Origin: Octopus bimaculoides
Taxonomy: Eukaryota
Direction of reading: 5' to 3'
DNA: 64,000 nt
Assembly: GCF_001194135.2 (NCBI RefSeq)
Contig: NC_068991.1
Coordinates: 7,358,008 to 7,422,007, forward strand
A program made the translations under genes and the position numbers. The notes under the pieces are model-generated. The model did no database searches. It had not been told where the DNA came from and saw only the letters and a list, made by a program, of their open reading frames with translations. Positions 5,064-45,040 of the stretch are shown piece by piece; the stretch's first letter is position 1; every line of letters begins with the position of its first letter.

Positions 5064-8000
5064 GGATATATACATGTCAACAGGTGTAAGCTATACAATA
5101 GATTTTAATGAAATAAAAAGTATGAATGCAAAAAATATTTAGAGGATTTCCATAATCTATTCCCATATGCTTCTATTAATATGGAGATATTATTAATTTC
5201 ACTCAATATCTAATAAAGTACTAGTCAAAATGGCAGTACACAAGTTTGAACATTGGAAAATCAAGACATCAGTTAAGCTAAAGAAACACAAATTTTACCA
5301 GTAAAACTAAAATGTATGAAAGTCTAACTCACTTTGTGAGGCATCTTTTTTGTTTCATTTTCGCATTCAGGCACAGTAGATGGAGGTGGTGCATCTATCC
5401 ATGACAAAGTTAATGGATTGTTCTCAAGTCCATGTTCACACAATAAGGCTTTTTGCTGCATAAGTCAGAAAAAAATTATATCTGTGTTTAAAGAAAACAG
5501 AAATATGAATACAATCTATAGTCTTACAGTTCAAATAACTCTCCTACATCTCTAAAACACACACACAACCTTTATTTAATATGAATGGAACTTGAGGGAG
5601 TAAATGTGAGCAAAAATCATGATCTACAAGTCTTTACAATCAATTGCTTTGTAGTTACACACCAGAAAAGAACCCCCACTTCTATTTATGTATGTGGTGG
5701 TATGTTTGTTTTTTTCTTACTTACAAAATCATACACAAGACAGACCTGCACAAGAAGGATGAAATAATGAAAAACAGTCACATCATCATCATCATTTCAA
5801 CCCTTTAGCATTCGCATTATTCTGTCAAAATGTAATGCTCATTTTATCAAATGATATTGTTGGGTTGGTGAGGGAGGCCACATCTGTCCATTTTGAACAT
5901 AAAACAGGTACAATATTTGGGTCGGATATGGCCTGTTTAAATACTAAAGAGTTTAATGTCCTACCTGCTATGCTTGCATGGGTTGGACAGAATTTACTGA
6001 GATGGATTTTCTATGGCTGAATGCCTTTCCTGTCACCAACCCTCACCTGTTCCCAAACAATGGGAACATATCTGTTTTAGCATGGTTGCTGTGACTGGAT
6101 GCGTCTCCTAACACCAGCCACTTCAAAGAGTGTACCTAGTACTTTTTATGTGGCACCAGCACTTGTGAAGTTACCAAGTCACATGCAAGACAAGACGCCC
6201 CAACAGAGGGAGCAGGGTGCAGTACTGAAGGAGGTGGTTGAATGATGAGAGGTTAAAACATGCGGTTCGGGGTGCGAGTCATAGGGAACGACCGTCCGAT
6301 CGCCGACTACCCTACATAGTAGTCTGGACCCCCTTGGNNNNNNNNNNNNNNNNNNNNNNNNNNNNNNNNNNNNNNNNNNNNNNNNNNNNNNNNNNNNNNN
6401 NNNNNNNNNNNNNNNNNNNNNNNNNNNNNNNNNNNNNTCGGCAGAAAGGAGAGGCAAGGACATGCCTTCGAGTCGGAGAGCTCGGCGTAGCGTCGGCGCG
6501 GGCGAGGATACCGATCGGTCGATGGCGACAGCACGAACAGTGTCTAGCAGTCTAAGAGATACATGGCTACTCCAGTCGGAAAAGAGGAGAAAATGGTGAA
6601 GACCTGTCAGAGTGACTAAGTCTGTAGAATACAAAATAAAATGTGTAATCCAAAATATAACAATAAACTTATCAAAAATATTTATTTTAACTTACAGCCA
6701 TAGTCAGGGACTTGAACTCCACAATTCCACTGCCATTTTTCTTACTTGATACAACCAGGGCAGTAACTTCCCCATACTTCAAAGAAACAGAATTACAATG
6801 GCATTTAAAGACAGTCATAAGCATCTGAAAATTTAATTCGAGAAACCTACAAAAATATGAATAATGTGATTGAAGCTACTCTTCAGAATCTAAATGTATA
6901 TTTGAAGATCTTACCTTAGAAAACAATTCCTCCAAAATATCTGCTGTATAGCCACCATTTGAAATATCTCCTTTCTTGGATTTCCATTTGATCTTTGAGA
7001 AAAAGAAATAATTTATGCTATATTTAATCAAGACAGTTTCAGATTCCTTCCAGTTTCTCAAATTATTTGAAGTACACTTCAGTCACCAAACAGACTTTCT
7101 CATTTTATTTGCAGAGGAATCAGAGTTGATAACATTGTGACATATTGGTGAATGAGTTGCTCTGACCTCCTCTATTTGATAGTTTCTTATTCTGGAGAAA
7201 CAGAATGCATATTGCTTCATTGGATTGATGCAAATGACCAAAAAAATAGAATTGTATCTTAAAGCTTTTCTCTCGGGAATTTGATAGGAAAAACACATCT
7301 GCAACCATGTCTAAAACAGGTCACCTTAACTGCACTTAGCTGTCAACCAAACAATGCAATTTGATGAGAACTTACAAGAAACAAGCAAATAGACTGAGTT
7401 GCTTTCCCTCGAATCAGAAAATATCAACCTAAATTTATGGCATGCTACAAACTACAGTTAATACCAGTCACATTCACGGTTAACTCAACAGTAAAAGTTA
7501 CAAATATTACATATATAATTACAAACATGTTTTTCTTCAAAAATAGTCAAATAGATTTAAAATTAAATTACCTTTAATCGGGGAAGAAGCTCTGATGAAG
7601 CTAAACACAAAAAGAAATATAATCTACATATAAATGATATAAGGAAATAGTTCATGACATAGCAACAATACAAGCGACTAAATGATAACTATATAAGCTC
7701 ACATGTAACTTATAGTTACATGTCCATACATAGCTAACTATACTTATAAATTGGTAACTCCGCTTCACTAATGTAATACTTGTAGACTATTTTTGAAAAA
7801 TACAATGGAGACATAGTCATTTAATACAACAAATAATACCATAAATACAGAAAGTGAAACATGATAGATAATTACTCATAAATATTCATGAATAAATTGT
7901 ACGCCTAATTAGTATTTATTTTTGTACATTTTTTTTCTTCTTCATAGTTTCACATCCCAGTTATTTTTCAGTTAAAATCAAGTATAAAATATTGTGGCTT

Positions 8001-13874: not shown

Positions 13875-14438
13875 ATGAAGACGATTTACGCTGACCAAAC
13901 TGTGAACGTGCCGGAGGGAGTGACAGTAAAAGTTAGTTCAAGGCGTGTAACAGTTACTGGTCCTCGCGGAACCCTGTATCGCAACTTCCGACACCTTTTC
14001 ATCACAATTACTCTGCCTAGGAAGAACCTCGTCAAAGTCGAAAAATACTTCGGTAAGAGGAAAGAATTGGCCGCTGTGCGCACTGTTTGCACTCATATTG
14101 AAAATATGATCAAAGGTGTTACTAAAGGGTTCCGTTACAAGATGAGGTCTGTCTATGCCCATTTCCCAATTAACGTTGTGGTATTGAATAATGGTAATGC
14201 CGTTGAAATAAGAAATTTCCTTGGAGAGAAATTTGCCCGGCATGTGGAAATGTTACCTGGTGTTCTCTTTTCCGTATCGACGGCGCAAAAGGATGAATTC
14301 GTCTTAGAAGGAAATGATATCGAGTTGGTTTCCAGATCAGCTGCCCTCATCCAACAGTCAACATCAGTGAAAGAAAAAGATATAAGAAAGTTCTTGGATG
14401 GCATTTATGTTTCCGAGAAAGGTACAATACAGGAATAA
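13875..14438 (+). CDS. RPL9: 60S ribosomal protein L9 (uL6), 187 aa, intronless CDS
   Basis: Uninterrupted ORF MKTI...[13 protein letters not shown]...[10 protein letters not shown]...[16 protein letters not shown]...[31 protein letters not shown] at 14434-14439 and 14498-14503. Confidence 0.99.
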
Positions 14439-19990: not shown

Positions 19991-22811
19991 TAAAACCCAT
20001 TATTTGTGCCTTTTTCTTACATACGTAAGGTGTGGTAAGAAGCTTGCCTTGCAATCACAGTACAGGGCTCAGTCCCACAGCACCTTGGGCAAGTGTTTCT
20101 CTACTATAGCTTCTGGCCTAACAAAGCCTTCTGAGTGGATTTGCTACATGGAAACAAACAAAAAGCATATATATATATATAAATATACACACACATATAT
20201 ATTGCCAGTGCCCCTGGACTGGCTCTTGTGCGGGTGACACATAAAAGACACCATTTCGAGCATGGCCGTTTTCGTGCGGGTGACATGTAAAAGCACCCAC
20301 TACACTCTCTGAGTGGTTGGCGTTAGGAAGGGCATCCAGCTGCAGAAACGCTGCCAAATTAGATTGGNNNNNNNNNNCACTCTCTGAGTGGTTGGCGTTA
20401 GGAAGGGCATCCAGCTGCAGAAACGCTGCCAAATTAGATTGGAGCCTGGTGTTGCCATCCGGTTTCACCAGTCCTCAGTCAAATCGTCCAACCCATGCTA
20501 GCATGGAAAGCGGACGTTAAATGATGATGATGATATATATGTATGTATGTGTTCGTCCACCTACCATCGTTTGACAACTGATGTTGGTGTGAATAACTTA
20601 GCAGTTCGCCAAAAGAGTGATACAATAACTACTAGGCTTACAAATAATAAGTCCTGGAGTTGATTTCGACTAAAACTCTTATAAGGTGGTGCTCCAGCAT
20701 GACCAGTCAAAATGACTGAAACAAGTAAAAGAATATATATATATAAACATGATTCTATCAAATCCACTCACAAAGCTTTTGTTAACTTGAGGCCCAAGCT
20801 GCCATGCAGTAGGACTGAACCTGAAACCATGCAGTTAGGAAGCAAACTTCTTAACCACACCCCCACATCTGAAGGCAGCTTGAAGAATATAATACTAGAA
20901 AGTTGCAAGTAGACAGCTTCGTGTCAGAGAAATAGAAATAAAATTCAACATATTCAAAAATGATATTAACAAATTTTTATCTTTTCCATTTGTTATTGTA
21001 ATAAAGGAGAAAGATGAAACATAAAATAAATGAAAACAATATTGTTATTTTGATAATTCATTGAAAGATGTTGAATGATTTCATTACTCCTGAGATATAT
21101 ATAAAGTTGTATGAAATGAAATTTTATCAGTACAAAAAAAAAAAAAAAAAAAAAAAAGGAAAGCTTTTCTTGAAATATCTATGATTATTTAAATTAAAAA
21201 AAAAAACATATTGGCAGGAAGTAACATTATATAAACAAAAAAATTCAGTCAAGATTAACAATGACATTAGTACAGACAGAAACAACTGATTCCAGTATAG
21301 GCACAAAGCCTGAAAACTGGTTTAAAAAAAAAAAATGTGGCGTTGATACCATGAATCCCAGTATATAACTGGTACTTTATTTTATTAACCCCAAAAGAAT
21401 GAAAAGCACAGTTGATCTTGGTGGTATTTGAACTCGGAACATAAAGAGCTAAAAGAAATACCTCAAGGCATTGTTTGATGTTGTAGAAACACTACCAATC
21501 CATAATAATGACGAAGCTTTTGCAAGGGGAAACAACTCCATATTGTTTGTCGTTGAACCTGTTTACAACTGGTTATTTCCCTGCTATAAGAAATGATTCA
21601 TTGTAAACGAGAAATAATCAAAGGAACCAGTGAAGAAATATTTGTCAATTAATATTCCTAATTTGATATAGAATATAGATATATGAATATATATATATGA
21701 ATAAGTAAACCTAAACAAAATACTTATTTAAATTCACTCAGACGAACCAGTAATATCATATTTCACATGAGCAGAAATACAGGGTGTCTAAAAAACAAAA
21801 TTGAATTTTCATCATCAACCCTTGGATATTACTGTGTTGAACCTTAAGCCTCATAAGACACATTACCTGGTTTCCATAGCATATAAGTGACTGAGATCGC
21901 AACATTCCCCCTGGATGGGATGCCAGTCCATTGCAGTGTTACTCATTTACAGCTGAGTGGACTGGAGCAATGTGATATGAAGTGTTTTGATCAAAAACAC
22001 AACACACTGCCCAATCTAGCTATCGAAACCATGATCTTGCGGTCCTCAGTGCAACACCCTAACCACTAGGCTATACGCTTTCATCTTTTTTTTTCTTTTT
22101 ATCAGCATATCCTATAATGATTTGATTCCATTAAAAATTTTTTCAAGTGCCAAATTATACAATCCAGTGATGAAATGTAGAGAGGAAAACTAAGTTGTTT
22201 CATCAAAAGTGCTTGAATCATTTGTAATTTTGCAAACCTAAATCCTCATATTTTTGCTCTGAGTTAAGGATTTGTCTTTTAATTACAGTAAGAACAGTAT
22301 GCAGAAAGAGAAGTGATTTTGTTCGTTAGAAAATAAAACCTTTGCAGGAGCATTTTTTTTTTTTTTTTAATGTTTGCAAAGAATTATAAACAAACAGTAA
22401 TTTTAGAATTTTAATAATAGAAAAGATAGTGATGACAAGATGATATGAAAACAGTCTTTGATAAAGCTATTCAACTAAGAAAACAATACATGGTATAGCA
22501 GCAATTGTTACTATTGCTTGACAAATTCCACAGCATAGAATGTCAACTCAGAAATATGGTTCTCCCTATGTGAAAAATTCAAAGGAATTTATCAAACTTT
22601 TGGAGTAAACTTTTACCAAGAGAATAACTATGAGTGTCTCTAAACTGAGAGAGATGGGGGTGGGGCAAAGAAAAAAAATAAAATAAAATCAACAAAATGA
22701 TAAATAATTAGATTGAGACCTCTAAGATAGGAGCCAATATGAAATGTCATTATTATTATTATTTACTCTTTTTTTTCATTTTTTTTTTGTTAGTAATTAC
22801 TTTGATAGATA

Positions 22812-25808
22812 TTAATCTTCAGTCCATTCAAACGGCTCTGGAGGTTCTGGTTCTGATTCTTCTTCGACTTTGGGACCACCTGCAGCAATAGGTTCTACAA
22901 GGTCTTCAAGATCATCTGGTTTGCGATTGTGTAACATAATGATTCCTCCGCTCGTTACATCTTTCACTGACGTATATCTCGAGGAATCTGGCATGGTGAT
23001 CATTCGGAGCTGTGCACGCATAACTCGAGCTGGGTTGTCTAATAACTCAAAGTTTGCTTCTGGCTTCTTTTCTTTTTCTTCCTCTTTCTTTTCTTCTTTT
23101 CCTTCTTTCCCTTCCTCTTTCTTCTCTTTAACCACTTCTTTCTTCTCTTCCTTTTTCTCTGTTTTAGCAGTCTTCTTTTCTGGCTCATCTGAAGTCTCTT
23201 CATCTACATCCATTTTCTCTTCTTTCTCCTTCTTTTCAGCTTCTTTTTTCTTTTGTTTAGCTGTAATACTGAGGACAGCAGTTTTAACTTTTTCTTTAGT
23301 TTTGTCTTTTTTTTCTTCTAAATGAGGTGGGTATGCAAATGTGGAAGGTTTTGCATTAGAACGAAACTGTACTTTTGGCATTAACAAATTGCTGTTGAGT
23401 CCAATTATACAAGTAGGCTTAAATGCCAAGGATAAAAAGTGAGTAAGAGGGTACCAAAACCAATACTGACAAAACACCAACATTCCTACCACAGCTTCCA
23501 TATTGGTATGACCTGTGCGAGACTGAAGAGAAATAGTAACATTTCGACCACCGGCATCTAGTATTCCTTGGGCTAAGATAGCGCCAAATTTTGCCATAAC
23601 ATCATCATGTTTGTCAGTAATTACTTTAGTATATAATTGACGGAAGTGTGTGACTTTCGGGCAAGTGATTTCATTTTGCTGAATAAGAACTAGAGCTGAA
23701 GCAATGAGGGCCCCTTGCCGTACGTAGTTAACAGGGTCATTAGTCATGGGTTCCAACAGGGTCAGAGCTTCTTTTAGACCAGTTCCAGCACAAGCAATGC
23801 CCAAAGCCATTGCAGCACCAAATCTAACATGAGGATTATAACTTTCCGATAGTAAAGAGACAACTTGTGGACATTTTTCAGGAGTCCGGAACAGAAGAAA
23901 TCCAAGGGAAGTGACAGCGACACGTCTCACATCATCATTGACGTCGCTGACAGCAATATGGAGCAATTTTCTGATAGCTTGGTTGTTGCCAGAACCACAG
24001 TAAGCCATAGCAAGGGTATACATGCCAGACCAACGAAGAATAGGATCCTTATCTTGAGACAAAGTTTTGACTAGTTCGTCAGCTTCTTCCATCCGACCAT
24101 ACATGGTAAGGGCGATACCAACGGACAAGCCACGAAGAATTTTCTCGTGCTGAGTATCCTGTGCATATACAAGCATATCGTGGATAGCAGCATCATTCTT
24201 AGTTCCAAGCATTACTAACCCCATAGCAAGTCCTGCTGCTTCACCAGTCACTGCATCATCTTGGTACAAATTTATCCGAAGTTGTTCAAAGATATCTTGC
24301 TGAGCAGTACCCATCGCTGCCAGACCCAAGCCAAGACAACCTCCATGTCTCACCATTTCGTTTGTGGCCTCTTTAAGTTGACTGAGTAAATAATTTGTAA
24401 TCTCACCTCCATGATTAGCATGAATTAATCCAAGAGCATAAAGACCCCCACCTTCTGAATAGGTAGATCCTGGACTCGAGTCTTTGGGTAGATATGTAGA
24501 CATGAAATTCAAGACATCCTTCTCATGGCCCTTATGAATAACACCAAGACTTGCAGTTGCAGTGAATTTAGCCCAGTTAGTGGCACGAGCCAACCATTCT
24601 AAATTGTCGCGAAGAAACTGATCGCATGTAGTGCCACAATGCATAAAAGAATTGGCAATAACAGTGGCTGAGTGACACAAGGAATTACGAACAGCATCTT
24701 TGGTATTTTTCAGAATCAATGAATCAGTTTTATTGTTCCTAATAAGGAAATCCAAGTGCAATTTTATAGTGTTTTCTCCTCCAAGAATGGTATAAAGTTT
24801 GACAATTTTCTCCTGAAGATCTTTTTGGTCTTCAGTTAGCGACGGACTTGCAGGTGCTGGTGCAGCTGCTTCTGCGGATTTCTCCTCATCGACTTCCATT
24901 TTCTCTTCCTTGTTTTCTACACTGGGAGCAACTTGTTTTTCTTCTTCCGTTTTCATGGACGGTAATGGTGCTGGGGCCACCTGCCGAAGCCAGTTTTGCA
25001 CCTCCTGTAGAAATTGTTGGGTCGCACTCTCATACAAATCAAATGCAATTTGAAGAGCTTTAAGTTGCGATTCTTCATTTCCCTTAATTAATTTCTCTAG
25101 GATATTTGCAACAGATTGGTGGTCATCCAAGAAAATATAACACTGACATACACTGATATAATCTGGGGACTTAAGGCGCATGTAGAGCTCAGTAAGAACA
25201 CGTAGTACATCATTTCTAAAATGTCTACTCATTATGTGAGATAAACAAACTTTTAAACTATATGCCAACATTGCCGAAGGGTCATCCGATTCCAAAATTG
25301 CTTTTTCAAACATATCAATCCTTCTTGTTTCCAAAGCAATACCCACAACTTGTTTATATTGTTTATCATCAAAACACCTCTGAAACATTCGATTAACTAT
25401 CGCTTCAAGTCGAGTATCCATCATTTTAGCATCATCTTGTGTTTCAGCGTTAATAACCTGCGTTTTGGTATATTGGTCCATACATTTTGCTTTGATTGTA
25501 GACACATATTCAGAAGTATCAGTAACATCAAACAAATTGAGGGCTCCCAAAGCATACTTAAGTGAATCCTCATAAGCCCCAAGATGATAATAAACTTTAG
25601 AAGCAACTAAAGCAGCCAGATCACGGCAACGGAAATCATGACTTTCATACAATACCTCAATTTTTACAACCGCTTCAGCTATTTCAGCCCAAAATACATC
25701 AACGATCTTGTTTAGTTTTTCCAAAGCAAATACCTTCAGTTGTTCGTCCGGTTCGTCCAGCAGAGATATAACTCCTGAAGCCGAAGTCATATGAGTTTTC
25801 ATCTTCAT
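22812..25808 (-). CDS. PSMD1: 26S proteasome non-ATPase regulatory subunit 1 (Rpn2), intronless, ~998 aa
   Basis: Single uninterrupted ORF: [37 protein letters not shown]..., PC repeats ([48 protein letters not shown]), C-terminal [10 protein letters not shown]. Start taken at 25808 (AAAACCATGA context); 25790 (MTSASG) is an alternative. Confidence 0.98.
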
Positions 25809-25893
25809 GGTTTTTTTGACAACGGAAACTTTAATAAGCAGCAAAAGTTGTCAGATACAAACAACAACGTGACACAGCACAAGTTCGAGATGG

Positions 25894-32842: not shown

Positions 32843-35800
32843 TCAAAATTTCAAAGCTTCCGTGAAGTGTTCTGTTGGATTCAATCCAAAATGTAGAGCA
32901 AGTTCATTTTGCCAAGCCCAAGCCATTCGTTCAGTACTAAAATTGACAGCAACTTGTCCCATTTTATTTAAAACTATAGCTCCACCGCAACCATTAACTC
33001 TGTTCAACATAAAATTAATGGCTTCTTTGGCTGCTGCATCTGGATCAAATCCTAAAAAGAAAAATGATAAAAAAGAAATTAAAAAATTATATCAATTTAC
33101 AAGATATAGTTCCAGGCTAGAAATGCAAACTGTAAGTGTGGACATACCATAGCTACATTTATACTTTAGCTGGAAAAGACGGTTTTATAAGTATCAAAGA
33201 ATTTAGTATTATGAGATTATTCTATTACCTTGTTCCAAAAGATGGATGATATGTTTAGCAAGACATACTTTTGATATAGCTTCTCCATGACCAGTTGTTG
33301 AAACTGCACCTATGTTATTATCAGCATATCCACCAGAACCTAGGGAGATAAATGTTAAATGTGATTGCTTTTTGGACAGAAAGCAGACAAGAATTGTAAA
33401 TCATTGCATATGCAGTTCAGTTTGATAAATTAGCTTTGTAAGCAATGGTAACAGGTCTGCTAGAAATAGAAGTCAAATTTCAGCCAATTACTAATAAAAA
33501 GGAAAGGATACATTGGATAATGTTGTCTTGGATATACAAAAAGACAAGATGGTCAAGGCCAGAACATCTTTGATTAGAGCTGAAAAATAACATTGTAAGT
33601 GACGGAATGCCAACAACACGAAGATGTGACATTACATAACCACTGGATGCAAAAGATTTGAGTGTTATCTGTTGGAAGAGTAAACTGCATGAAAGGCAGG
33701 GCACAAGTAAAATGAGAGATCATCTGGGCATGTGATGTGAATGAATATTGTGGGTTGGGTTGAGAAACGTAGCATGTTGTCACTGGAAGGTACTTGCAGG
33801 CAAGATAGACATGTGAAGGAGTAGTGAGGTCTGATGAACGATCAAGACCACATACTGACCACAAGCCCATCCAATTCATGTCAGGACAGGTAAAAAGATA
33901 TTAACAGAACTTCATGTTAAAATGAATAGAAATTATTGAAATTAAGAGACTTTACCTATTATGGGACTGTCACCAACTCTTCCAAGTCTTTTGGCTGTGA
34001 TACCACCAGTGGATGTACCACATGCTAGATTACCAAACTTATCTAGTGCAATGGCACCGACAGTATTGTGGCCTTCACTAAGAAATGTAAATTAAACATA
34101 AACTCAATATCAATTCTCATAAATACTAAAAGTTTAACTTAAAATCCTTAATTTCTCAAAATCAAAACTGATCATATACTATGTAATATTTCTACACAAA
34201 AGATATCAAGGACTTTAACAATTTCATATCAATTCTTCCTTCACACTTTTATTTTTCATTTAATCAGTTAATGTAATAAAAGGTTATGTTTAATGGGCAA
34301 ATAAAGATGAACAATACAAGCATATAATAACACGTATATATATATATATATATGAGCGTGGCCGTTGCCAGTACCGCCTGACTGGCTCCCGTAGGATTTT
34401 CAAGCGAGATCGTTGCCAGTGCCCCTGGACTGGCTTGTGCGGGTGGCACATAAAAGACACCATTTCGAGCGTGGCCGTTTTCGTGCGGGTGACACGTAAA
34501 AGCACCCACTACACTCTCTGAGTGGTTGGCGTTAGGAAGGGCATCCAGCTGTAGAAACTCTGCCAAATTAGACTGGAGCCTGGTGTTGCCATCCAGTTTC
34601 ACCAGTCCTCAGTCAAATCGTCCAACCCATGCTAGCATGGAAAGCGGACGTTAAACGATNNNNNNNNNNNNNNNNNNNNNNNNNNNNNNNNNNNNNNNNN
34701 NNNNNNNNNNNNNNNNNNNNNNNNNNNNNNNNNNNNNNNNNNNNNNNNNNNNNNNNNNNNNNNNNNNNNNNNNNNNNNNNNNNNNNNNNNNNNNNNNNNN
34801 NNNNNNNNNNNNNNNNNNNNNNNNNNNNNNNNNNNNNNNNNNNNNNNNNNNNNNNNNNNNNNNNNNNNNNNNNNNNNNNNNNGCTGTACTCTTCCACCAC
34901 AACTTTCTCTCACTCTTACTTCCTGTTTCTGTTGTGCCTGTATTTCAAAGGGTCAGCCTTGTCACACTGTGTCACGCTGAATATCCCCGAGAACTACGTT
35001 AAGGGTACACATGTCTGTGGAGTGCTTAGCCACTTGCACGTTAATTTCACGAGCAGGCTGTTCCATTGATTGGATCAACTGGAACCCTCGACGTCGTAAG
35101 CGATGGAGTGCCAACACACACACACACACACACACACATATATTTATATATATATACACACACACACACATATATATGTGTGTATAAGGTTGAATGTGGA
35201 TTCGTCCTTTAACTGGAATGGTTTCCAAAAATAATTGGCAGTTAAACTTTATTGGTGTCAGCCCTAAAAGTGCACCAGCCGTGTATAAATAGAAACTGAG
35301 TACATTTTCAACCTTTTGGTATTTTCCTTTAGATTTTGTCTCCTACTTCTGAATCATTTCGATATCAATAATCTCTGACCCTCCTCCCCCATTTATAGAA
35401 TATAACAAACAGTTAATATATTATCAAAGATAAAAATAACATTATTATAGGGATTTAAACTCTGTTACACATTATTTAGCTTGGACAGTAGATATAATTT
35501 CTACTTATACCATTCCAAATACGTCATATACATAGAATTGGGAAAGGAGTAATGTTTAGTTTATATGTATAATACACACTATAAATGTTAGGTTTAAAAA
35601 TCTGGAGGAAATTGCATATTAAATGTGAATATGATAACTTAAAAACCAACTTACACTTGTTTTGATGAATGAAATAGATTTTGAATCGTGCTCTTAAATT
35701 CCATATAAGTTTGCCATTCCTTTTTAGCACTTTCTGTAACTAAAACCTCAGTTGGGACAGTAGATACACCATGCTCTTCAGCAAAAGCATTAGCTCCTCT

Positions 35801-38420
35801 ACCCACTAACAACACATGATCAGTCTGTGAAATTACGAAGGAAAATAAGATATTACATTTGAACCAGTAATCAATAATAAAGGAAGGTGTTTATAAGCCA
35901 TCAAAGAAACACACAAAAACCGTTAGATTCACTTCAACATTTAAATTTAATTTGTCAACATATTTTGGTCACTTTGAGACTGCGACCTGTTCATTGACAA
36001 AATTCCATGGTTGCGGTCTCAAAGCGAAGAAAATATTTTGACAAATTAAATTTAAATGTTGAAGTGAATCTAACAGTTTTTGTGTGTTTCTTAAATGGCT
36101 TATAAATACCTTCCATGCTGCATGTCTGTGGGCATGACATAGTAAAAACACATACTAAATACAGGCCTCCAAGTTCAAGTTTAGATACGTGGAAAATAAT
36201 GCAAGGAGCAGAAGAATAATAGAATATTTTTAAAAGTTACTACTTCTTGTCTGTGGTCATGACATAGTAAATGAACCGGAAGAATCTGAAGAGCTTCAAA
36301 TATAATGCCTTGTAAGATTTTGCTGTACCAAGGTAGCACGCTGGCGGAATCAGTAGCACACCAAGCAAAATGCTTAACAGCATTTTGTCCACCTTTATGT
36401 TCTGAGTTCAAATTCAGCTGAGGGTGACTTTGTCTTTCATCCTTTCTGGGTCAATAAAATAAGTACCAGTTGCATACTGGTATCGATCTAATTGACAGCC
36501 CGCCCCCATCTTCCCCCAAAATTTTGAGTCTCGTGCCTAGAGTAGAAAAGAATAATATAAGTACCAGTTGAGCACTGGGGGAATCGATGTAATCAACTTA
36601 TGCCCTCCCCCCAAAATTGCTGGGCTTGTGCCAAAATTTCATTATACCAAGGCAGGAAGCTGGCAGAATGGTTAGCACAGTGAACAACACACTTAGCAGC
36701 GTTTCATCCAGCTTTACATTCTGAGTTCAAATTCTGCCAAAGTTGACTTTACCTTTCATACTTCATAAAATAGGTACCAGTTAAATATTGGGGTCGATGT
36801 AATCAACTTAACCCCTCCCCTGAAAATGATGACCCTGTGCTAAAATTTGAAACCAACATTTCATTATACTACTGTTTTTTTTTTTAAATATTTTAAGCTC
36901 AAATCCTTTCAGGGTTGAAAAAATAAAGTCTCTGTCAAACATTGCAGTTGACAGACTCAATTATATTCATCATCATCATGAACGTTTAACGTCCGCCTTC
37001 CATGCTGGCATGGGTTGGACGATTTGACTGAGGACTGGTGAACTAGATGGCTGCACCAGGCTCCAGTCTGATCTGGCAAAGTTTCTACAGCTGGATGCCC
37101 TTCCTAACACCAACCACTCTGAGAATGTAGTGGGTGCTTTACTCTCTTCCAAAAATTGTGTCTATGTCAGAAACCAATATATTTAGAATTTTTATAGAAC
37201 TCAAAAAACAAGTTTAAATGTTTTTCTAAAACAACCCAATGCTTATAGAGGGAACCAAATGTACAAACTAAAACACTGCAGATCAGTCTAATATTTAAAA
37301 GAATATTACCCTTTCCATAACAATCTGAGCTAGTTGTATAGGGTTAGCAATGTTCTGCACACAAGCAACAGCACCACTGTTTAGAGTAGAACCTTCCATA
37401 ATCATTGCGTCCATTTCAACTTCACCAATGCTGTTAAGCACAGATCCGGTGCCTAATGAATGAAAGTTAGTAAAACAACATGTAAATATGAGAAAACAGC
37501 TCAATCTTCTACAACACACATAAGTATATAACACTAACTGTAGTCGGTTATTTTTAGAGAGTTCAATAATGCAGACTATGAAATATTGTAATCAACAGTA
37601 AATGTTAAATGTTCTCTGACTAATGACTTTATGGAAAGTATTTTATTATTGTTGTTGTTGTTGGCACTCCGTCGCTTACAACGACGACGAGGGTTCCAGT
37701 TGATCCGATCAACAGAACAGCCTGCTCGTGAAATTAACGTGCAAGTGGCTGAGCACTCCACAGACACGTGTACCCTTAACGTAGTTCTCGGGATATTCAG
37801 CGTGACACAGTGTGACAAGGCTGACCCTTCGAATTACAGGCACAACAGAAACAGGAAGTAAGAGTGAGAGAAAGTTGTGGTGGAAGAGTACAGCAGGGTT
37901 CACCACCATCCCCTGCCGGAGCCTCGTGGAGCATTAGGTGTTTTCGCTCAATAAACACTTACAACGCCTGGTCTGGGAATCGAAACCACGATCCTATGAT
38001 CGCGAGTCTGCTGCCCTAACCACTGGGCCATTGTGCCTCCACGGAGTTTATAATGTCTATGAGAAATACAGCAATAAAATACATATCTATCTGTAAATGG
38101 TGCATTTTGTTTCAACAAATTCTCAACTAGTTTTAACTTATCAGCAAAAAAAATTTCTGATAGGAACAAATTTAAACAGAGACCAATGTGTTTATGGAGA
38201 AATGGGTTTTAAAAAGTTACATACCAGCATCAAAGACAGGATCATTCTCAAGACTTGTCACAGCAGTCACAACAGCATCTATTGCACTTCCATTTTGCTT
38301 TAATTTCATAAATCCCAAATTAGCAGCATGTTTTACTCCTTCTACACTTCTTTCAGACATATCATCGGGTATAGCCCAAGCTCCACCATGGACGGCTATA
38401 ATGGGCTTTATATCATTCAT
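32843..38420 (-). CDS. ASRGL1: Isoaspartyl peptidase/L-asparaginase (Ntn hydrolase), 6 coding exons, 316 aa
   Basis: Exons (minus): 38225-38420, 37310-37452, 35655-35824, 33956-34077, 33229-33339, 32843-33051; 951 nt, phases consistent. Motifs [40 protein letters not shown]|[13 protein letters not shown]...[24 protein letters not shown]. Confidence 0.95.
33590..33880 (+). mobile_element. Highly degenerate RTE LINE 3' fragment in an ASRGL1 intron
   Basis: Weak nucleotide resemblance to the RTE 3' region at 63200-63595. Confidence 0.35.
35882..36114. mobile_element. Fold-back element/MITE with ~106-bp inverted arms and a 21-nt spacer
   Basis: 35882-35987 (GGAAGGTGTTTATAAGCC...CTTTGAGACTGCGACC) is nearly the reverse complement of 36009-36114 (GGTTGCGGTCTCAAAG...GGCTTATAAATACCTTCC). 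No clear TSD. Confidence 0.85.
36335..36860 (+). mobile_element. Cluster of 2-3 SINE-A copies/fragments in tandem
   Basis: Repeated SINE-A head, core and tail segments starting at about 36335, 36555 and 36652. Confidence 0.8.
37650..38041 (-). mobile_element. tRNA-derived SINE family D, near full length, (AAC)n tail
   Basis: Minus-strand head ggaggcacaatggcccagtggttagggcagcagac...ggtttcgattccc has A/B boxes. The body matches 34883-35115, 18585-18900 and 56310-56570. Confidence 0.85.
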
Positions 38421-38813
38421 ATTTCAGCCTGTCTCTTCTTGTTTTCTACTTTGCCAGTTTCTTTATTAAAATATTTAAACATGTGTTCTTTAAAAACAAT
38501 ATGTATATATGTGGGTGTGTATATAAGTAAAGAAACATATCTTCTAAAGTGCATGAAAGGGTTAGCTGCAAGTTGCACACAATCTTACATAGATAACAAG
38601 CCCCAAATATTGGTGAAAAATTTAATGAGCACTGGAACAAAAACTTCAAAAAACTCCTCCCAACATGCACTAGTCATATATATGGTGGTATTCTTTTCTA
38701 CTCTAGACACAAGGTTCAAAATTGGTGGGGGGGGGGGGAAGTCAATTAGATTGACTCCAGTACGCAACTGGTACTTAACTTATTGACCCCCCCACAAAAG
38801 GATGAAAGGCAAC

Positions 38814-39790
38814 CCCTCAATCTACAGGGTCTAAGTGATTATTTGTTGGAAGTTTCGTTTATAGCATCCATTTTTCAGGAAGTTATGAGGCAACAAAGTC
38901 GGTGGGGTAGTTATGTCAAAGTTATGAGCGGGGAGGCAAGTCAGATTGTGTGAATTTACCGAAACTCCTCTTCCTACCCCCTTGGGGAAATNNNNNNNNN
39001 NNNNNNNNNNNNNNNNNNNNNNNNNNNNNNNNNNNNNNNNNNNNNNNNNNNNNNNNNNNNNNNNNNNNNNNNNNNNNNNNNNNNNNNNNNNNNNNNNNNN
39101 NNNNNNNNNNNNNNNNNNNNNNNNNNNNNNNNNNNNNNNNNNNNNNNNNNNNNNNNNNNNNNNNNNNNNNNNNNNNNNNNNNNNNNNNNNNNNNNNNNNN
39201 NNNNNNNNNNNNNNNNNNNNNNNNNNNNNNNNNNNNNNNNNNNNNNNNNNNNNNNNNNNNNNNNNNNNNNNNNNNNNNNNNNNNNNNNNNNNNNNNNNNN
39301 NNNNNNNNNNNNNNNNNNNNNNNNNNNNNNNNNNNNNNNNNNNNNNNNNNNNNNNNNNNNNNNNNNNNNNNNNNNNNNNNNNNNNNNNNNNNNNNNNNNN
39401 NNNNNNNNNNNNNNNNNNNNNNNNNNNNNNNNNNNNNNNNNNNNNNNNNNNNNNNNNNNNNNNNNNNNNNNNNNNNNNNNNNNNNNNNNNNNNNNNNNNN
39501 NNNNNTTCTGAAAAAAAATTTTCAAAAATCTCAATTTCAAAATTTCGATTCCCCCTTCCCCGGTTTTTATATAGATCCACAGGGTAAACCTAACCCTAAC
39601 CCTAACCCTAACCCTAACCCTGAACCTGACCTGAGATTTGGCTGTTATTTCTAGCAAGTAAATAGCCTGCATGGGTGGGGGGTTGAAATTTTTCAAACAA
39701 TTTTTTTTCAGAATCGGAATCTCCATAGCCTAAAACGTGGGATTCCGTAAAAAAATAAATAAATAAGGGGGGGGTTCAGATTACATATAG
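38814..39790. mobile_element. Unclassified insertion containing a (CCCTAA)n tract, spanning a gap
   Basis: Truncates a SINE-A at ~38810; compositionally distinct and CpG-containing; CCTAA(CCCTAA)4 at 39589-39617. Interior hidden by Ns (38992-39505). Confidence 0.45.
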
Positions 39791-39969
39791 TCCGTCTCCG
39801 CCCTTCTCCACTTGGTGCCAACATGACCTTTCCGTCCTTTAAATAAAGAAATAACAAATATATTTACTTACCTGAGTACTTAATGATATTGAATAAAAAT
39901 CGATTTCTAAATATAATTATTTGTAAAAACAGACAGTTTTTAAAAAAAATATTTTAGATATATTTAAAC

Positions 39970-40209
39970 TTAGACGGGCATTTGTGCTGCTTTTGATTGA
40001 GTCGAAGGGTCTTCAAAACAATTCGTACCAGTTTCTTCTTCGATTTTTTTCTGAATTTTAGCAGCCTTTTTATCATAAAAGCTTTTCACTCTCTTCAAAT
40101 AGCTTACACGTAAAGTTTTTAATCTGTATCCGACTACAACACCTATGACAAATGCAATTGATGCCGCTATAACAATTTCCCTGCCCGTGGCATGCATTTT
40201 GACGAGCAT
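39970..40209 (-). CDS. MTLN: Mitoregulin-like microprotein (79 aa from ATG 40209; 75 aa from ATG 40197), single exon
   Basis: IVIAASIAFVIGVVVGYRLKTLRVSYLKRVKSFYDKKAAKIQKKIE aligns without gaps to human MTLN as remembered (LQLSVLVAFASGVLLGWQANRLRRRYLDWRKRRLQDKLAATQKKLD), 15/46 identical by manual count. Same TM helix followed by a basic amphipathic segment. Both ATGs are in AAAATG context. Confidence 0.75.
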   Translation of the reverse strand: MLVKMHATGREIVIAASIAFVIGVVVGYRLKTLRVSYLKRVKSFYDKKAAKIQKKIEEETGTNCFEDPSTQSKAAQMPV

Positions 40210-40337
40210 TTTCAAACTCAATCATGTTTAACTTAGCTAGAAAACTATGGAATACAATATGCGTCATCTAAGCCTAATTTGTGTTAACTTGTTTTAGGTA
40301 AACTAGTGAATGTGCGAGCGAGTGCACATATAGTCTT

Positions 40338-40585
40338 TTACTCTTTAACTTGTTTCAGTCATTTGACTGCGGTCATGCTGGAGCACCGCCTTTAGTCGAG
40401 CAAATCGACCCCAGGACTTATTCTTTGTAAGCCTAGTACTTATTCTATCGATCGCTTTTGCCGAACCGCTAAGTCACGGGGACATAAACACACCAGCATC
40501 GGTTGTCAAGTGATGTTGGGGGTGGGAACAAACACAGACACACATACATATATACAACGGGCTTCTTTCAGTTTCCGTCTATCAA
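40338..40585 (-). mobile_element. SINE family C, partial
   Basis: ttgtttcagtcatttgactgcgg.catgctggagcaccgcctttagtcgagcaaatcgaccccaggacttattc... recurs at 15840, 20540, 44808, 50410, 52485 and 58745. Confidence 0.85.
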
Positions 40586-43500
40586 AGAAACCGAGTAATC
40601 AAGATATTGTAGCACGTCTGTTCAACCGTACTTCTTTTTCACTCGTTCCACATGAATTGTCTGAATGGTGATGTTTATGAAACTAGCACATATTTTTTTG
40701 TTGCACGTTTCGTTATGTCTCCGTTCCGTTTTAAGTTCAAATCATACTGGATGATCGATTTCGTTATTCCAACCTTTGAGGGATTGATAAAATAAGTAGC
40801 AGCAGCAATTAACTGAGAATTAATTCAATGCACTAAACGTCTATCTTTAAAAACAAAACAAAAAAAACATTCAGAAAAAGATCGTTATTTTATTATTTTT
40901 CCTGTAATAAAATTCGTTTGAAAATATTTTTAATTGCAATTAATTTTTAAAAATAAAATATTTTAAACTGAAAGCTGTACATTTTTTTATATATATATAT
41001 ATCATAATGATGCATTTTCGGGATAATAAACAATTTCTACGAACATAACGTCGGGTGAAGCTACTTTCACATTTAGATGAATTAGTTGACTCTAAAGGGC
41101 GCTATTTACCGCAATTTCTTGGGTTCCACTATAAACAGTAAGTTAATTAATAATCAGACGGATTGTTTTTTTTTGGGGGGGGGGATCAGGTTTTAAATCA
41201 TAAATGTGTGTGAAAACAAATTCATTACATGATGAATTTTGCGACAAATTATTTATAATTCCAATTTTAATGTATGTGGTGCCGGAACAAGCACAAAAAT
41301 TATCAGTAATTGATCAACAGCATTTGTTTACATTAGAAAAGCTTTTGCATACATCTCGATCGATAATCAATCATTATACACTTTTAATTTGGTTAATGCA
41401 TTTGGAAAGTGCGTTTATACAGGTAGTTTGGTGAATTGTTTAAAATATTGTTATTTCAAATATATTTAATCTCCTTTTTAGTTTACATTGAGAAAATGTA
41501 GTTTAACATTGGGAAATATAAAAATGAAACCAGATAATATCGACTTATCGCTGTTAACTATCGTAGTCAAGACTTGAATTATGAAAGCTATTTTCATATT
41601 AATACCTGAACTTTAGCAGCCCAACCTGACCTCGTGCCTGATAATAACTATTATTATTTTACTTTCAATACATCATCCTTTAACACATTATCTAAATTCA
41701 TGCCCATTCGCGCTCATTTGAGTTATTCTTCTTAGCTGAGTTTATTTCTTTAATTATATAAATTATTACTAACCTCAAAATCGTCGCATCTATTTTTCTA
41801 TATGTAAGCTTTTGTCAAATTATTTAAGCGAGCTTGAGTAAGTTGTGTTGATGAGGTCCAATAAGATCAAAACATGCTCATAGTTGTTCCTTTGTCTGCA
41901 AACAAAGATCAGATTTCCCCTAAACATGTATTTTAATTTTGAAAAATTAATTCTTGATTTCTTGAAGGCTAAATAATCTTTGATTGCTAGTTTCGAGCCT
42001 TTTTTTTTTTCTTCTTTTTGCCTACATTATTGAGTAACTACTCAAATTCAGGCCATTAGTTCATCTGAGTTGTTTTCCTTAGCTCATTTTTGTAAAATTA
42101 ACAATTATTAACGTTTTCCAATTAGATAATATATGGTTTCCCTAGTTCAAACAGATTTAGAATCACAAATTCTTTTACTCCTGGTGAAATATTCTACCAC
42201 TGTGTATTTTTTCCCCTATAAATAATAATTTTAAATGCAATGGAAGCTGGATTGATATAATGTAATACACAGCAGCATATGTACCTGACATAGCAAGAAC
42301 TGTAGCAAGTCTAGTAATATGATCAAGGAAATATTTTGATATTGCATATTTAACAAGAGGCAAATATAGTCCACTGTTATGTCTTACTTCTGTATCATTT
42401 AGATTTCTTGTTCAGAAAATATTGCCCATACATCTAATTCTTCTCCAGATTGTTATAACTTTGAAAGTTCTTTTGCTCCACCTTTTCCCATACAGACATC
42501 AGCCTATTGAAGTTTGAACTGAACAAGAATGGCATTGATCTGGGAGGGCCTGGTAAATACCATAAAAATGCCCCTCCTCCTTGGACATATAAGTTCTGAG
42601 AAGCTGGTGGTCCTTTGTGTTGGCAACAATTATAGAGTGAAGTACATAAGTTTGGATATGTTCATATGTCAAAAGGAGAAAAGGAATCTGATGTTCCCAG
42701 ACCAACCCTTCGTTTGAGAAAAGAGATTTTCTAACCCATAGATTTAGGGTAAGGAGAGAGGGTAAATGAATGAAGTGTGTGTAGGTAAAGTATTGGAAGG
42801 AAGAAAAAGTAATGAAATTCAAAATATTCATTTTTGTGTAGTGTTGTTTAACTAGAAGTCAGTGGACACAAGTGATAGTTTAAAGAAGTGAAAAAATATG
42901 AGTATAGAGATAGTGTAGAAAATATTGGTGACGTTATGTGGTCAGGGAATAGAGGCAGAAATTACAGAAGAATATGCATTTTTATAAGGTGGAAGGCTTC
43001 TCTGATACCCTGCTATTCCTTGGTGGAAATATTGATATGATATGGTTTACATTATACTAGAATCATTTTCCCAAAACTGTATTTTAGAATGAACTGTTTT
43101 CTTTCTATTTCAAAGGTTATTAATGACTACTGACGGCTATTCTTCAAAATTGCCAAAAATTCTCAAAATGTAAGTTACACAGTATGTTTCTAAATTTCAT
43201 CAATCCCCTTTATTTTATTATTCAATGCTTTTCCAGAATTAAATGTTTTTACAGGATGTTTTTTTAAATTTTTTATTTCTGACTGCTATTAGTGGGGAAT
43301 CTTTTGTATTAACCTAGTGTATTATTGAGAGAAATTTATTGTTTGGATCTCTACTGTGGAACTTTGAATCCTATTGTCTACTTACTGGGATTATAGGCGA
43401 TCGTTTTAGGAGAAAATAGTTGTTTTAGAGAGCATGATTTCTTTGACTTCTCAGTAAAAAATACTTAAGATAATAGTATGTGAGTTGAGTGAGAGTTGGC

Positions 43501-44807: not shown

Positions 44808-45040
44808 AAACTCTCTTTTACTCTTTTACTTGTTTCAGTCAATTGACTGCGGCCATGCTGGAGCACCGCCTTTAGTCGAGCAAATCGACCCCAGGACTTA
44901 TTCTTTGTAAGCCTAGTACTTATTCTAGCGGTCTCTTTTTGCCGAACCGCTAAGTTACGGGGACGCAAACACACCAGCATCGGTTGTCAAGCGATTTTAG
45001 GGGGACCAACACAAACACACAAACATGCACACACACTATT
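44808..45040 (-). mobile_element. SINE family C, 3' part
   Basis: Nearly identical to 40338-40585. Confidence 0.85.

Follow-up and report, generated by a model that had tools for sequence, protein, structure and literature searches.

The 64-kb stretch of Octopus bimaculoides contig NC_068991.1 analysed herein (positions 7,358,008 to 7,422,007; hereafter the window, in whose coordinates all positions are given) has a G+C content of 33–37 % and is interrupted by ten assembly gaps. On its minus strand lie, in this order, an open reading frame (ORF) of the mitoregulin (MTLN) family, a perfect splice donor and the gene for the enzyme ASRGL1, and a comparison of sequences makes it likely that a spliced mRNA carrying both ORFs is made from this strand. 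In ticks, the two ORFs are joined on one mature spliced mRNA. Together with a donor that recurs behind the MTLN stop in other lineages, the tick RNA contigs lend support to the suggestion of an earlier note on this DNA that one spliced transcript would encode both proteins. MTLN and ASRGL1 are each conserved as proteins across lineages, and their pairing is probably both real and ancient.

The two reading frames and the putative intron

The elements from which the mRNA would be built are listed below in the order of transcription; L004 and L005 are Logan contigs of a close relative, and lengths are in nucleotides (nt) or amino acids (aa).

39872–40294, minus strand: putative first exon, made up of 5′ leader, MTLN-like ORF and the 98 nt past its stop (from the L004/L005 alignment)
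39970–40197, minus strand: MTLN (mitoregulin)-family coding sequence, 75 aa plus stop (from PF22002, hhalign and the starts of relatives)
39866–39874, minus strand: splice donor CAG/GTAAGT, exon end 39872, 98 nt past the MTLN stop and conserved in L004
39811–39871, minus strand: opening 61 nt of the putative intron, shared with L004 to an unusual degree
38992–39505, no strand: assembly gap of 514 N, wholly inside the putative intron
38421–38489, minus strand: best candidate acceptor, ttgtttttaaAG, and the 67-nt leader to the ASRGL1 ATG, the exon beginning at 38487
38225–38420, minus strand: initial ASRGL1 coding exon, opened by the ATG at 38420 and with a GTATGT donor after it (PF01112, 51.6 bits; tblastn with human and tick ASRGL1)
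37453–37310, about 35830–35684, 34079–33954, about 33343–33229 and 33051–32843, minus strand: remaining ASRGL1 coding exons (tblastn)

The MTLN-like ORF possesses two in-frame ATGs, at 40209 and 40197, and closes with a TAA at 39972–39970. Initiation at 40209 would give 79 aa; this codon is not kept in L004/L005, and the relatives P0012 (66 % identity) and P0013 (57 %) begin at the equivalent of the ATG at 40197. As read from its sequence, the protein displays a putative N-terminal transmembrane helix, EIVIAASIAFVIGVVVGY, followed by a basic C-terminal part, RLKTLRVSYLKRVKSFYDKKAAKIQKK, and thus has the size (about 50–80 aa), the single helix and the basic tail of the mitoregulin family. Against the Pfam profile PF22002 (Mitoregulin) it scores 26.4 bits (E=6.2e-6) over profile positions 7–54 of 56, which is 0.6 bits short of the curated gathering cut-off of 27 bits. 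The profile is matched by 11/11 aligned family members, the best at E=1.7e-12.

These relatives surfaced only in an index-free HMMER scan of 1.84 billion representative proteins with the window ORF, which returned 12 matches, ten of them short proteins of 53–83 aa; on its own, the ORF gave no match in a word-indexed homology search. Named members include AbCp-37, a cDNA product of the scorpion Androctonus bicolor, and LOC144132230 of the tick Amblyomma americanum, the latter carried as an ‘uncharacterized protein’. Six residues (F, G, G, R, Y and L) are invariant throughout the family, as is the presence of a hydrophobic helix, and the relatives have in common the motif G-Y-K-L-K-x-x-R-[VI]-x-Y-L-K, with a C-terminal tail that varies across the whole family. 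A profile built from the family alignment reaches human MTLN with an hhalign probability of 97.7 % and E=2.5e-12. By profile methods and through these intermediates, the window ORF is therefore homologous to mitoregulin, and the MTLN-like label that it had been given in the earlier note is borne out by the Pfam match, the HMMER relatives and the comparison with the human protein.

The upstream limit of the putative first exon, 40294, marks where similarity to the related species starts, and the true transcription start site may differ. From this point to 39811, the window aligns with L004/L005 at 84.7 % identity over 504 columns, and on both sides the sequences are unalignable and filled with different repeats. 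Adjoining the upstream end of the conserved block is a short, dispersed repeat resembling a short interspersed nuclear element (SINE; 40300–40640, minus strand), further copies of which lie at 44814–45026, 20533–20735, 52490–52733 and elsewhere, with up to 90 % identity between copies; at its position L004 has a simple repeat instead.

With regard to the donor, both its 9-mer and its position, with the exon ending at 39872, 98 nt after the stop, are exactly as the earlier note had recorded. The 9-mer CAGGTAAGT occurs a single time on the two strands of the window. The looser pattern GTRAGT is found at a density of 0.39 per kb on the minus strand, such that the chance of encountering one within 130 nt is about 0.05. 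The 61 nt that follow the exon end show 60 matches, one mismatch and one 6-nt indel in comparison with L004, as against 83–88 % identity for the ORF and leaders. This conserved segment may be a control element for splicing or polyadenylation, or else a competing proximal polyadenylation (poly(A)) site.

The putative intron of about 1.4 kb wholly contains the assembly gap; hence no reading frame crosses the gap, and the frame is not at issue. The contigs of the close relative fail to bridge it, as their alignment ends at 39811. Previously, the interval had been described as consisting mostly of repeats, a description that holds in part: about five telomere-like (TTAGGG)n units stand in a row (about 39588–39627, minus strand), a dispersed repeat (38689–38812) has about 10 copies in the window, and the remainder has no second copy there.

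The next recognisable coding exon on the minus strand does carry the ASRGL1 ATG, as had been claimed and as PF01112 and tblastn confirm. An in-frame TGA 6 nt upstream fixes the ATG at 38420 as the ASRGL1 start. The translation of this exon ends in ...DPVFDAG, and the gene is complete in six exons, running to a stop at 32845–32843. Exon limits are approximate, being those of tblastn, and the splice borders of exons 3–5 are unrefined. The coding sequence is intact, with the autoprocessing site and the HGG motif present, as well as STTGHGE. When joined, the exons match the human ASRGL1 structure 4o0c at E=6.9e-68, with glycosylasparaginase (about 1e-41) and taspase (about 1e-29) following at a distance.

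Upstream of this ATG, the likeliest acceptor is that at 38488/38487, and candidates at 38632 and 38544 look equally good; a fourth, at 38428, is ruled out as it has no pyrimidine tract. Use of 38487, or of an acceptor farther upstream, would bring into the mRNA a 21-codon upstream ORF (uORF; 38417–38482, minus strand, with its ATG at 38482), the TGA of which overlaps the ASRGL1 start (ATGA). A fusion protein of MTLN and ASRGL1 is ruled out, since the MTLN frame closes with its TAA and an in-frame TGA stands 6 nt before the ASRGL1 ATG.

MTLN and ASRGL1 in ticks and other lineages

A look-up of the tick protein LOC144132230 led to its locus in the A. americanum genome (L008) and to a contig of 1062 nt that had been assembled from a sequencing run (L009). 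The latter harbours the MTLN ORF at 91–273 and, 113 nt on, an uninterrupted 225-codon ORF, MLPVVAVHGGAG..., which runs off the end of the contig and aligns both to the ASRGL1 exons of the window and to human ASRGL1. Positions 1–328 of L009 are 99.7 % identical to the genome locus, from which the contig departs at ACG/GTGCGT, 55 nt past the MTLN stop. As it leaves the genomic sequence exactly at a GT donor, L009 is a spliced cDNA. The rest of it is absent from the 10 kb of genome that lie downstream in L008, placing the tick intron at >10 kb. The distance from the junction to the ASRGL1 ATG is alike across lineages, at 59 nt in the tick, 67 nt in the window (predicted) and 57 nt in L001, an ASRGL1 contig from another organism (predicted).

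A closely related, tick-type MTLN of 60 aa (P0024) is found in ten RNA contigs (L011–L020) from ten sequencing runs, each of which contains both ORFs. ASRGL1 begins 93–138 nt after MTLN in these contigs, and in 8/10 its ORF is complete, at 313–318 aa, with a match to PF01112. The spacer between the ORFs comes in at least four sequence variants. An assembly chimera is excluded by these variants and by the independence of the ten runs. Thus, in 11/11 tick contigs shown (L009 and L011–L020), both ORFs stand on one mRNA.

Outside of the ticks, the arrangement can be followed to varying extents. In the close relative (L004/L005), the MTLN ORF is intact from the equivalent of the ATG at 40197, and the donor is kept. 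In a more distant relative, represented by the gap-free contig L003, the MTLN protein is 57 % identical, the DNA is unalignable, and a donor, TAG/GTAAGT, is located 102 nt after the MTLN stop. Some 5.7 kb downstream and on the same strand, L003 displays an ATG-led stretch resembling ASRGL1 exon 1 (6480–6660), directly behind a strong acceptor, ctcttttctttttcag. Frame-shifting deletions and a stop interrupt this stretch, and there is no ASRGL1 exon 2 in the 4 kb after it; it looks like a decaying relic of MTLN–ASRGL1 linkage.

A GTRAGT likewise follows the MTLN stop at 26 and 18 nt in the genomic contigs L021 and L022, respectively, the chance of finding one at the distances seen in the window, L003, L021 and L022 being 0.05–0.2 per locus. 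In L006, a large invertebrate contig, a GTAAAT comes 121 nt behind the stop; a further contig, L010, is collinear with L006 and is thus unspliced or genomic. Placement of the MTLN ORF in the first exon, ahead of a splice, therefore seems to be long established in the family.

Two further observations concern the surroundings of MTLN in metagenomes. In L034 (2921–4489) and L029, both Joint Genome Institute metagenome contigs from another invertebrate lineage, an MTLN-family ORF is followed 28 nt on by an intronless ORF of 453 aa that resembles makorin, with CCCH zinc fingers and a RING domain, such that MTLN has a different partner behind it there. In eight metagenome contigs (L023, L025, L026, L028 and L030–L033), a conserved motif, AACTGTAATATCGCTCA, occurs about 5–15 nt past the MTLN stop.

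Proposed mechanism and alternative explanations

According to the reading favoured here, a first exon of about 40294–39872 would carry the 75-aa MTLN, with its N-terminal transmembrane helix and basic C-terminal helix. The donor at 39872 would be joined across the gap-containing intron to the exon with the ASRGL1 ATG, most likely at 38488/38487, and five more ASRGL1 exons would follow in the same transcription unit. Some transcripts may end near the donor, giving an MTLN-only mRNA. ASRGL1 would be translated by ribosomes that pass the MTLN ORF or resume after it. In the tick mRNAs, no ATG between the two starts falls outside the frames of MTLN and ASRGL1, for which reason leaky scanning is proposed for ASRGL1 in these animals. 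The predicted mRNA of the window contains out-of-frame ATGs at 40193 and 40076, and acceptor 38487 would add the 21-codon uORF; as these intervene, reinitiation would be the likelier route here. The earlier note had held that such an mRNA must evade nonsense-mediated decay (NMD), its first stop lying >50 nt upstream of a junction. That argument draws on the vertebrate 50–55 nt rule, and in a bicistronic mRNA of this kind the five junctions internal to ASRGL1 would also be downstream of the first stop.

Several observations count against a two-ORF mRNA in the window. The candidate acceptor at 38487 reads AAG, rather than CAG or TAG, and has the rivals named above. Exact look-ups of the 79-aa and 75-aa forms of the MTLN ORF in the assembly collection found none. 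The core of this ORF (40024–40197, minus strand) is conserved no better than its flanks in comparison with L004 (299–472), from which it differs by 17 nonsynonymous codons and one synonymous codon. The depletion of ATGs between the two starts is not significant (P=0.07–0.41). With regard to linkage, the large invertebrate contigs L006 and L007 have no ASRGL1 within 10 kb downstream of MTLN, and none of 14 metagenome loci with MTLN (subgroup alignment) has ASRGL1. A search for homologues of ASRGL1 exon 1 gave fragments from other organisms, 57–66 % identical, and in the longest contig among them (L001, 5.2 kb) the 1.9 kb that precede ASRGL1 lack an MTLN ORF. Given a tick intron of >10 kb, most of these missing pairings say little. 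Lastly, the gap could conceal a terminal MTLN exon, an ASRGL1 promoter or a poly(A) site, and a possible cleavage site coincides with the donor, as considered next.

The alternative that survives best, although we judge it unlikely, is that of two separate genes arranged head to tail, in which MTLN would end near the donor or splice to a non-coding terminal exon, perhaps in the gap, and ASRGL1 would have its own promoter within the 1.4-kb interval. The human MTLN ORF, situated in exon 1 of a short transcript without a second coding ORF, sets a precedent for such an arrangement; in ticks, by contrast, the pair forms one mRNA in every contig shown. Much turns on the vicinity of the donor. Between the MTLN stop and the gap, the minus strand contains neither AATAAA nor ATTAAA, as the earlier note had correctly reported, and the variant AGTAAA at 39868, which it had passed over, shares bases with the donor and has a T-rich stretch after it. 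Cleavage is possible there, at an AGUAAA with a U-rich downstream element, and the 60/61 identity to L004 beyond the donor would be expected of a functional 3′ end. L003, too, has an ATTAAA about 25 nt before its donor. Nevertheless, the same site is a perfect donor 9-mer, unique in 64 kb, and a donor is placed at the same distance in L003, where the DNA is unalignable. Whilst 514 nt in the gap are unread, same-strand adjacency at 1.5 kb is what a bicistronic arrangement predicts, and separate MTLN transcripts could coexist with the two-ORF mRNA as an alternative isoform.

Far less probable is that the exon is spliced to ASRGL1 as proposed, with the MTLN-like ORF being nonfunctional as a protein gene and serving only as a long uORF that damps ASRGL1 translation. 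The Pfam score just below the cut-off, the preponderance of nonsynonymous differences from L004 and a C-terminal tail that differs in length and sequence would all agree with this. The window, L004/L005 and L003 all have the ORF intact, however, its six invariant residues are kept, and its replacements relative to L004 are conservative (I/V, K/R, A/V, S/T). Moreover, similarity at the protein level reaches L003, in which the flanking DNA is unalignable, and the variability of the tail is family-wide. That the two sides of the gap at 38992–39505 are not true genomic neighbours, owing to a scaffolding artefact, is scarcely credible: the gap length is merely estimated and the L004/L005 alignment ends at 39811, but in gap-free L003 a remnant of ASRGL1 exon 1 follows MTLN on its own strand, the two ORFs are physically joined in tick mRNA, and a chance misjoin giving this very pair in the right order and orientation would be very unlikely.

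If the two-ORF mRNA is taken back in time, the ancestor shared by molluscs and arthropods, and possibly that of all bilaterians, may have possessed MTLN and ASRGL1 as one bicistronic gene. The vertebrate ‘long non-coding RNA’ LINC00116/MTLN, in which the ORF stands in exon 1 and is spliced to non-coding exons, would then be the remainder after separation. This extension is tentative, and we would place it slightly below an even chance. Were it true, mitoregulin would be an ancient animal protein, the expression of which was originally coupled to that of an enzyme of isoaspartyl-peptide and asparagine repair or degradation.

Neighbouring genes and comparison with known systems

Two other genes in the window stand apart from the MTLN–ASRGL1 pair. 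An uninterrupted ORF of about 996 aa (22812–25844, minus strand) encodes the 26S proteasome subunit RPN2/PSMD1 (PF21505, 326 bits; PF18004, 162 bits). It is intronless, in contrast to its six-exon neighbour ASRGL1, and may be a retrogene. Similarly, an intronless and intact ORF of 187 aa (13875–14438, plus strand) encodes a relative of the ribosomal protein uL6/RPL9 (PF00347, 109 bits), and may be a processed retrocopy.

Mitoregulin is a much studied protein, the molecular role and membrane location of which are disputed; it is treated as a vertebrate invention, and a review from 2025 states that invertebrates are believed to be without it (PMC11920140). The existence of mitoregulin relatives in protostomes, as recognised here by sequence homology, is new. 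Also new is the coupling of MTLN to ASRGL1, proven in ticks and probable in the window. A full-text literature search found no paper that pairs mitoregulin or LINC00116 with ASRGL1, or that places either in a bicistronic pair, in agreement with the statement of the earlier note that no such pairing had been described.

That clear relatives exist in ticks and a scorpion, in a genome of mollusc type and in several other invertebrate contigs moves the origin of mitoregulin back by hundreds of millions of years. The link to ASRGL1 offers a testable lead on MTLN function, namely co-regulation with isoaspartate/asparagine metabolism, and would provide a concrete account of how a gene for a peptide ‘encoded by a long non-coding RNA’ arose. 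An exon–exon junction between two coding ORFs would furthermore make a test case for reinitiation, leaky scanning and NMD avoidance outside of the vertebrates. There is, in addition, a gap in annotation, as pipelines label the tick ORF an ‘uncharacterized protein’.

The ixodid tick mRNAs resemble the proposed mRNA of the window in the order of the ORFs, in a donor soon after the MTLN stop and in an ASRGL1 start about 60 nt into the next exon. They differ from it in that the tick pairing is known from RNA, and that of the window from genomic anatomy alone; in that the tick intron exceeds 10 kb, as opposed to about 1.4 kb; and in that the tick spacer is without out-of-frame ATGs, whereas the predicted mRNA of the window would have two or three. 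Vertebrate mitoregulin (MTLN/MOXI/LINC00116/SMIM37; PF22002), a small membrane protein with a single pass, is built on the same core, consisting of a hydrophobic helix, G-[YW]-x-x-x-x-x-R-x-x-Y-L and a basic helix. Its ORF, like that proposed for the window, lies in the first exon of its transcript, as reported for human MTLN (PMC6091870), with a splice after it. The vertebrate gene was, however, annotated as a long non-coding RNA, has no second coding ORF and is not reported beside ASRGL1. With 75 aa, the predicted protein of the window is longer than the vertebrate one of 56 aa, the residue that follows the helix is Y where the latter has W, and its ORF is upstream of ASRGL1.

Conserved bicistronic mRNAs that specify a small mitochondrial membrane protein and a second protein are known from Drosophila (sloth1/sloth2; PMC9681215) and human (SLC35A4 and STREMI; PMC13303939). 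In these systems, as in the one proposed here, a single mRNA carries two conserved ORFs, the first of them short and encoding a micro-protein of mitochondrial type. The pair in the window differs from them in its partner, the cytosolic N-terminal nucleophile (Ntn) hydrolase ASRGL1, and in having its ORFs in different exons, such that their putative dual translation would require the splice, and alternative polyadenylation could separate the two. MTLN–ASRGL1 joins a kind of mRNA already known, in which the ORF of a small mitochondrial protein precedes a second ORF.

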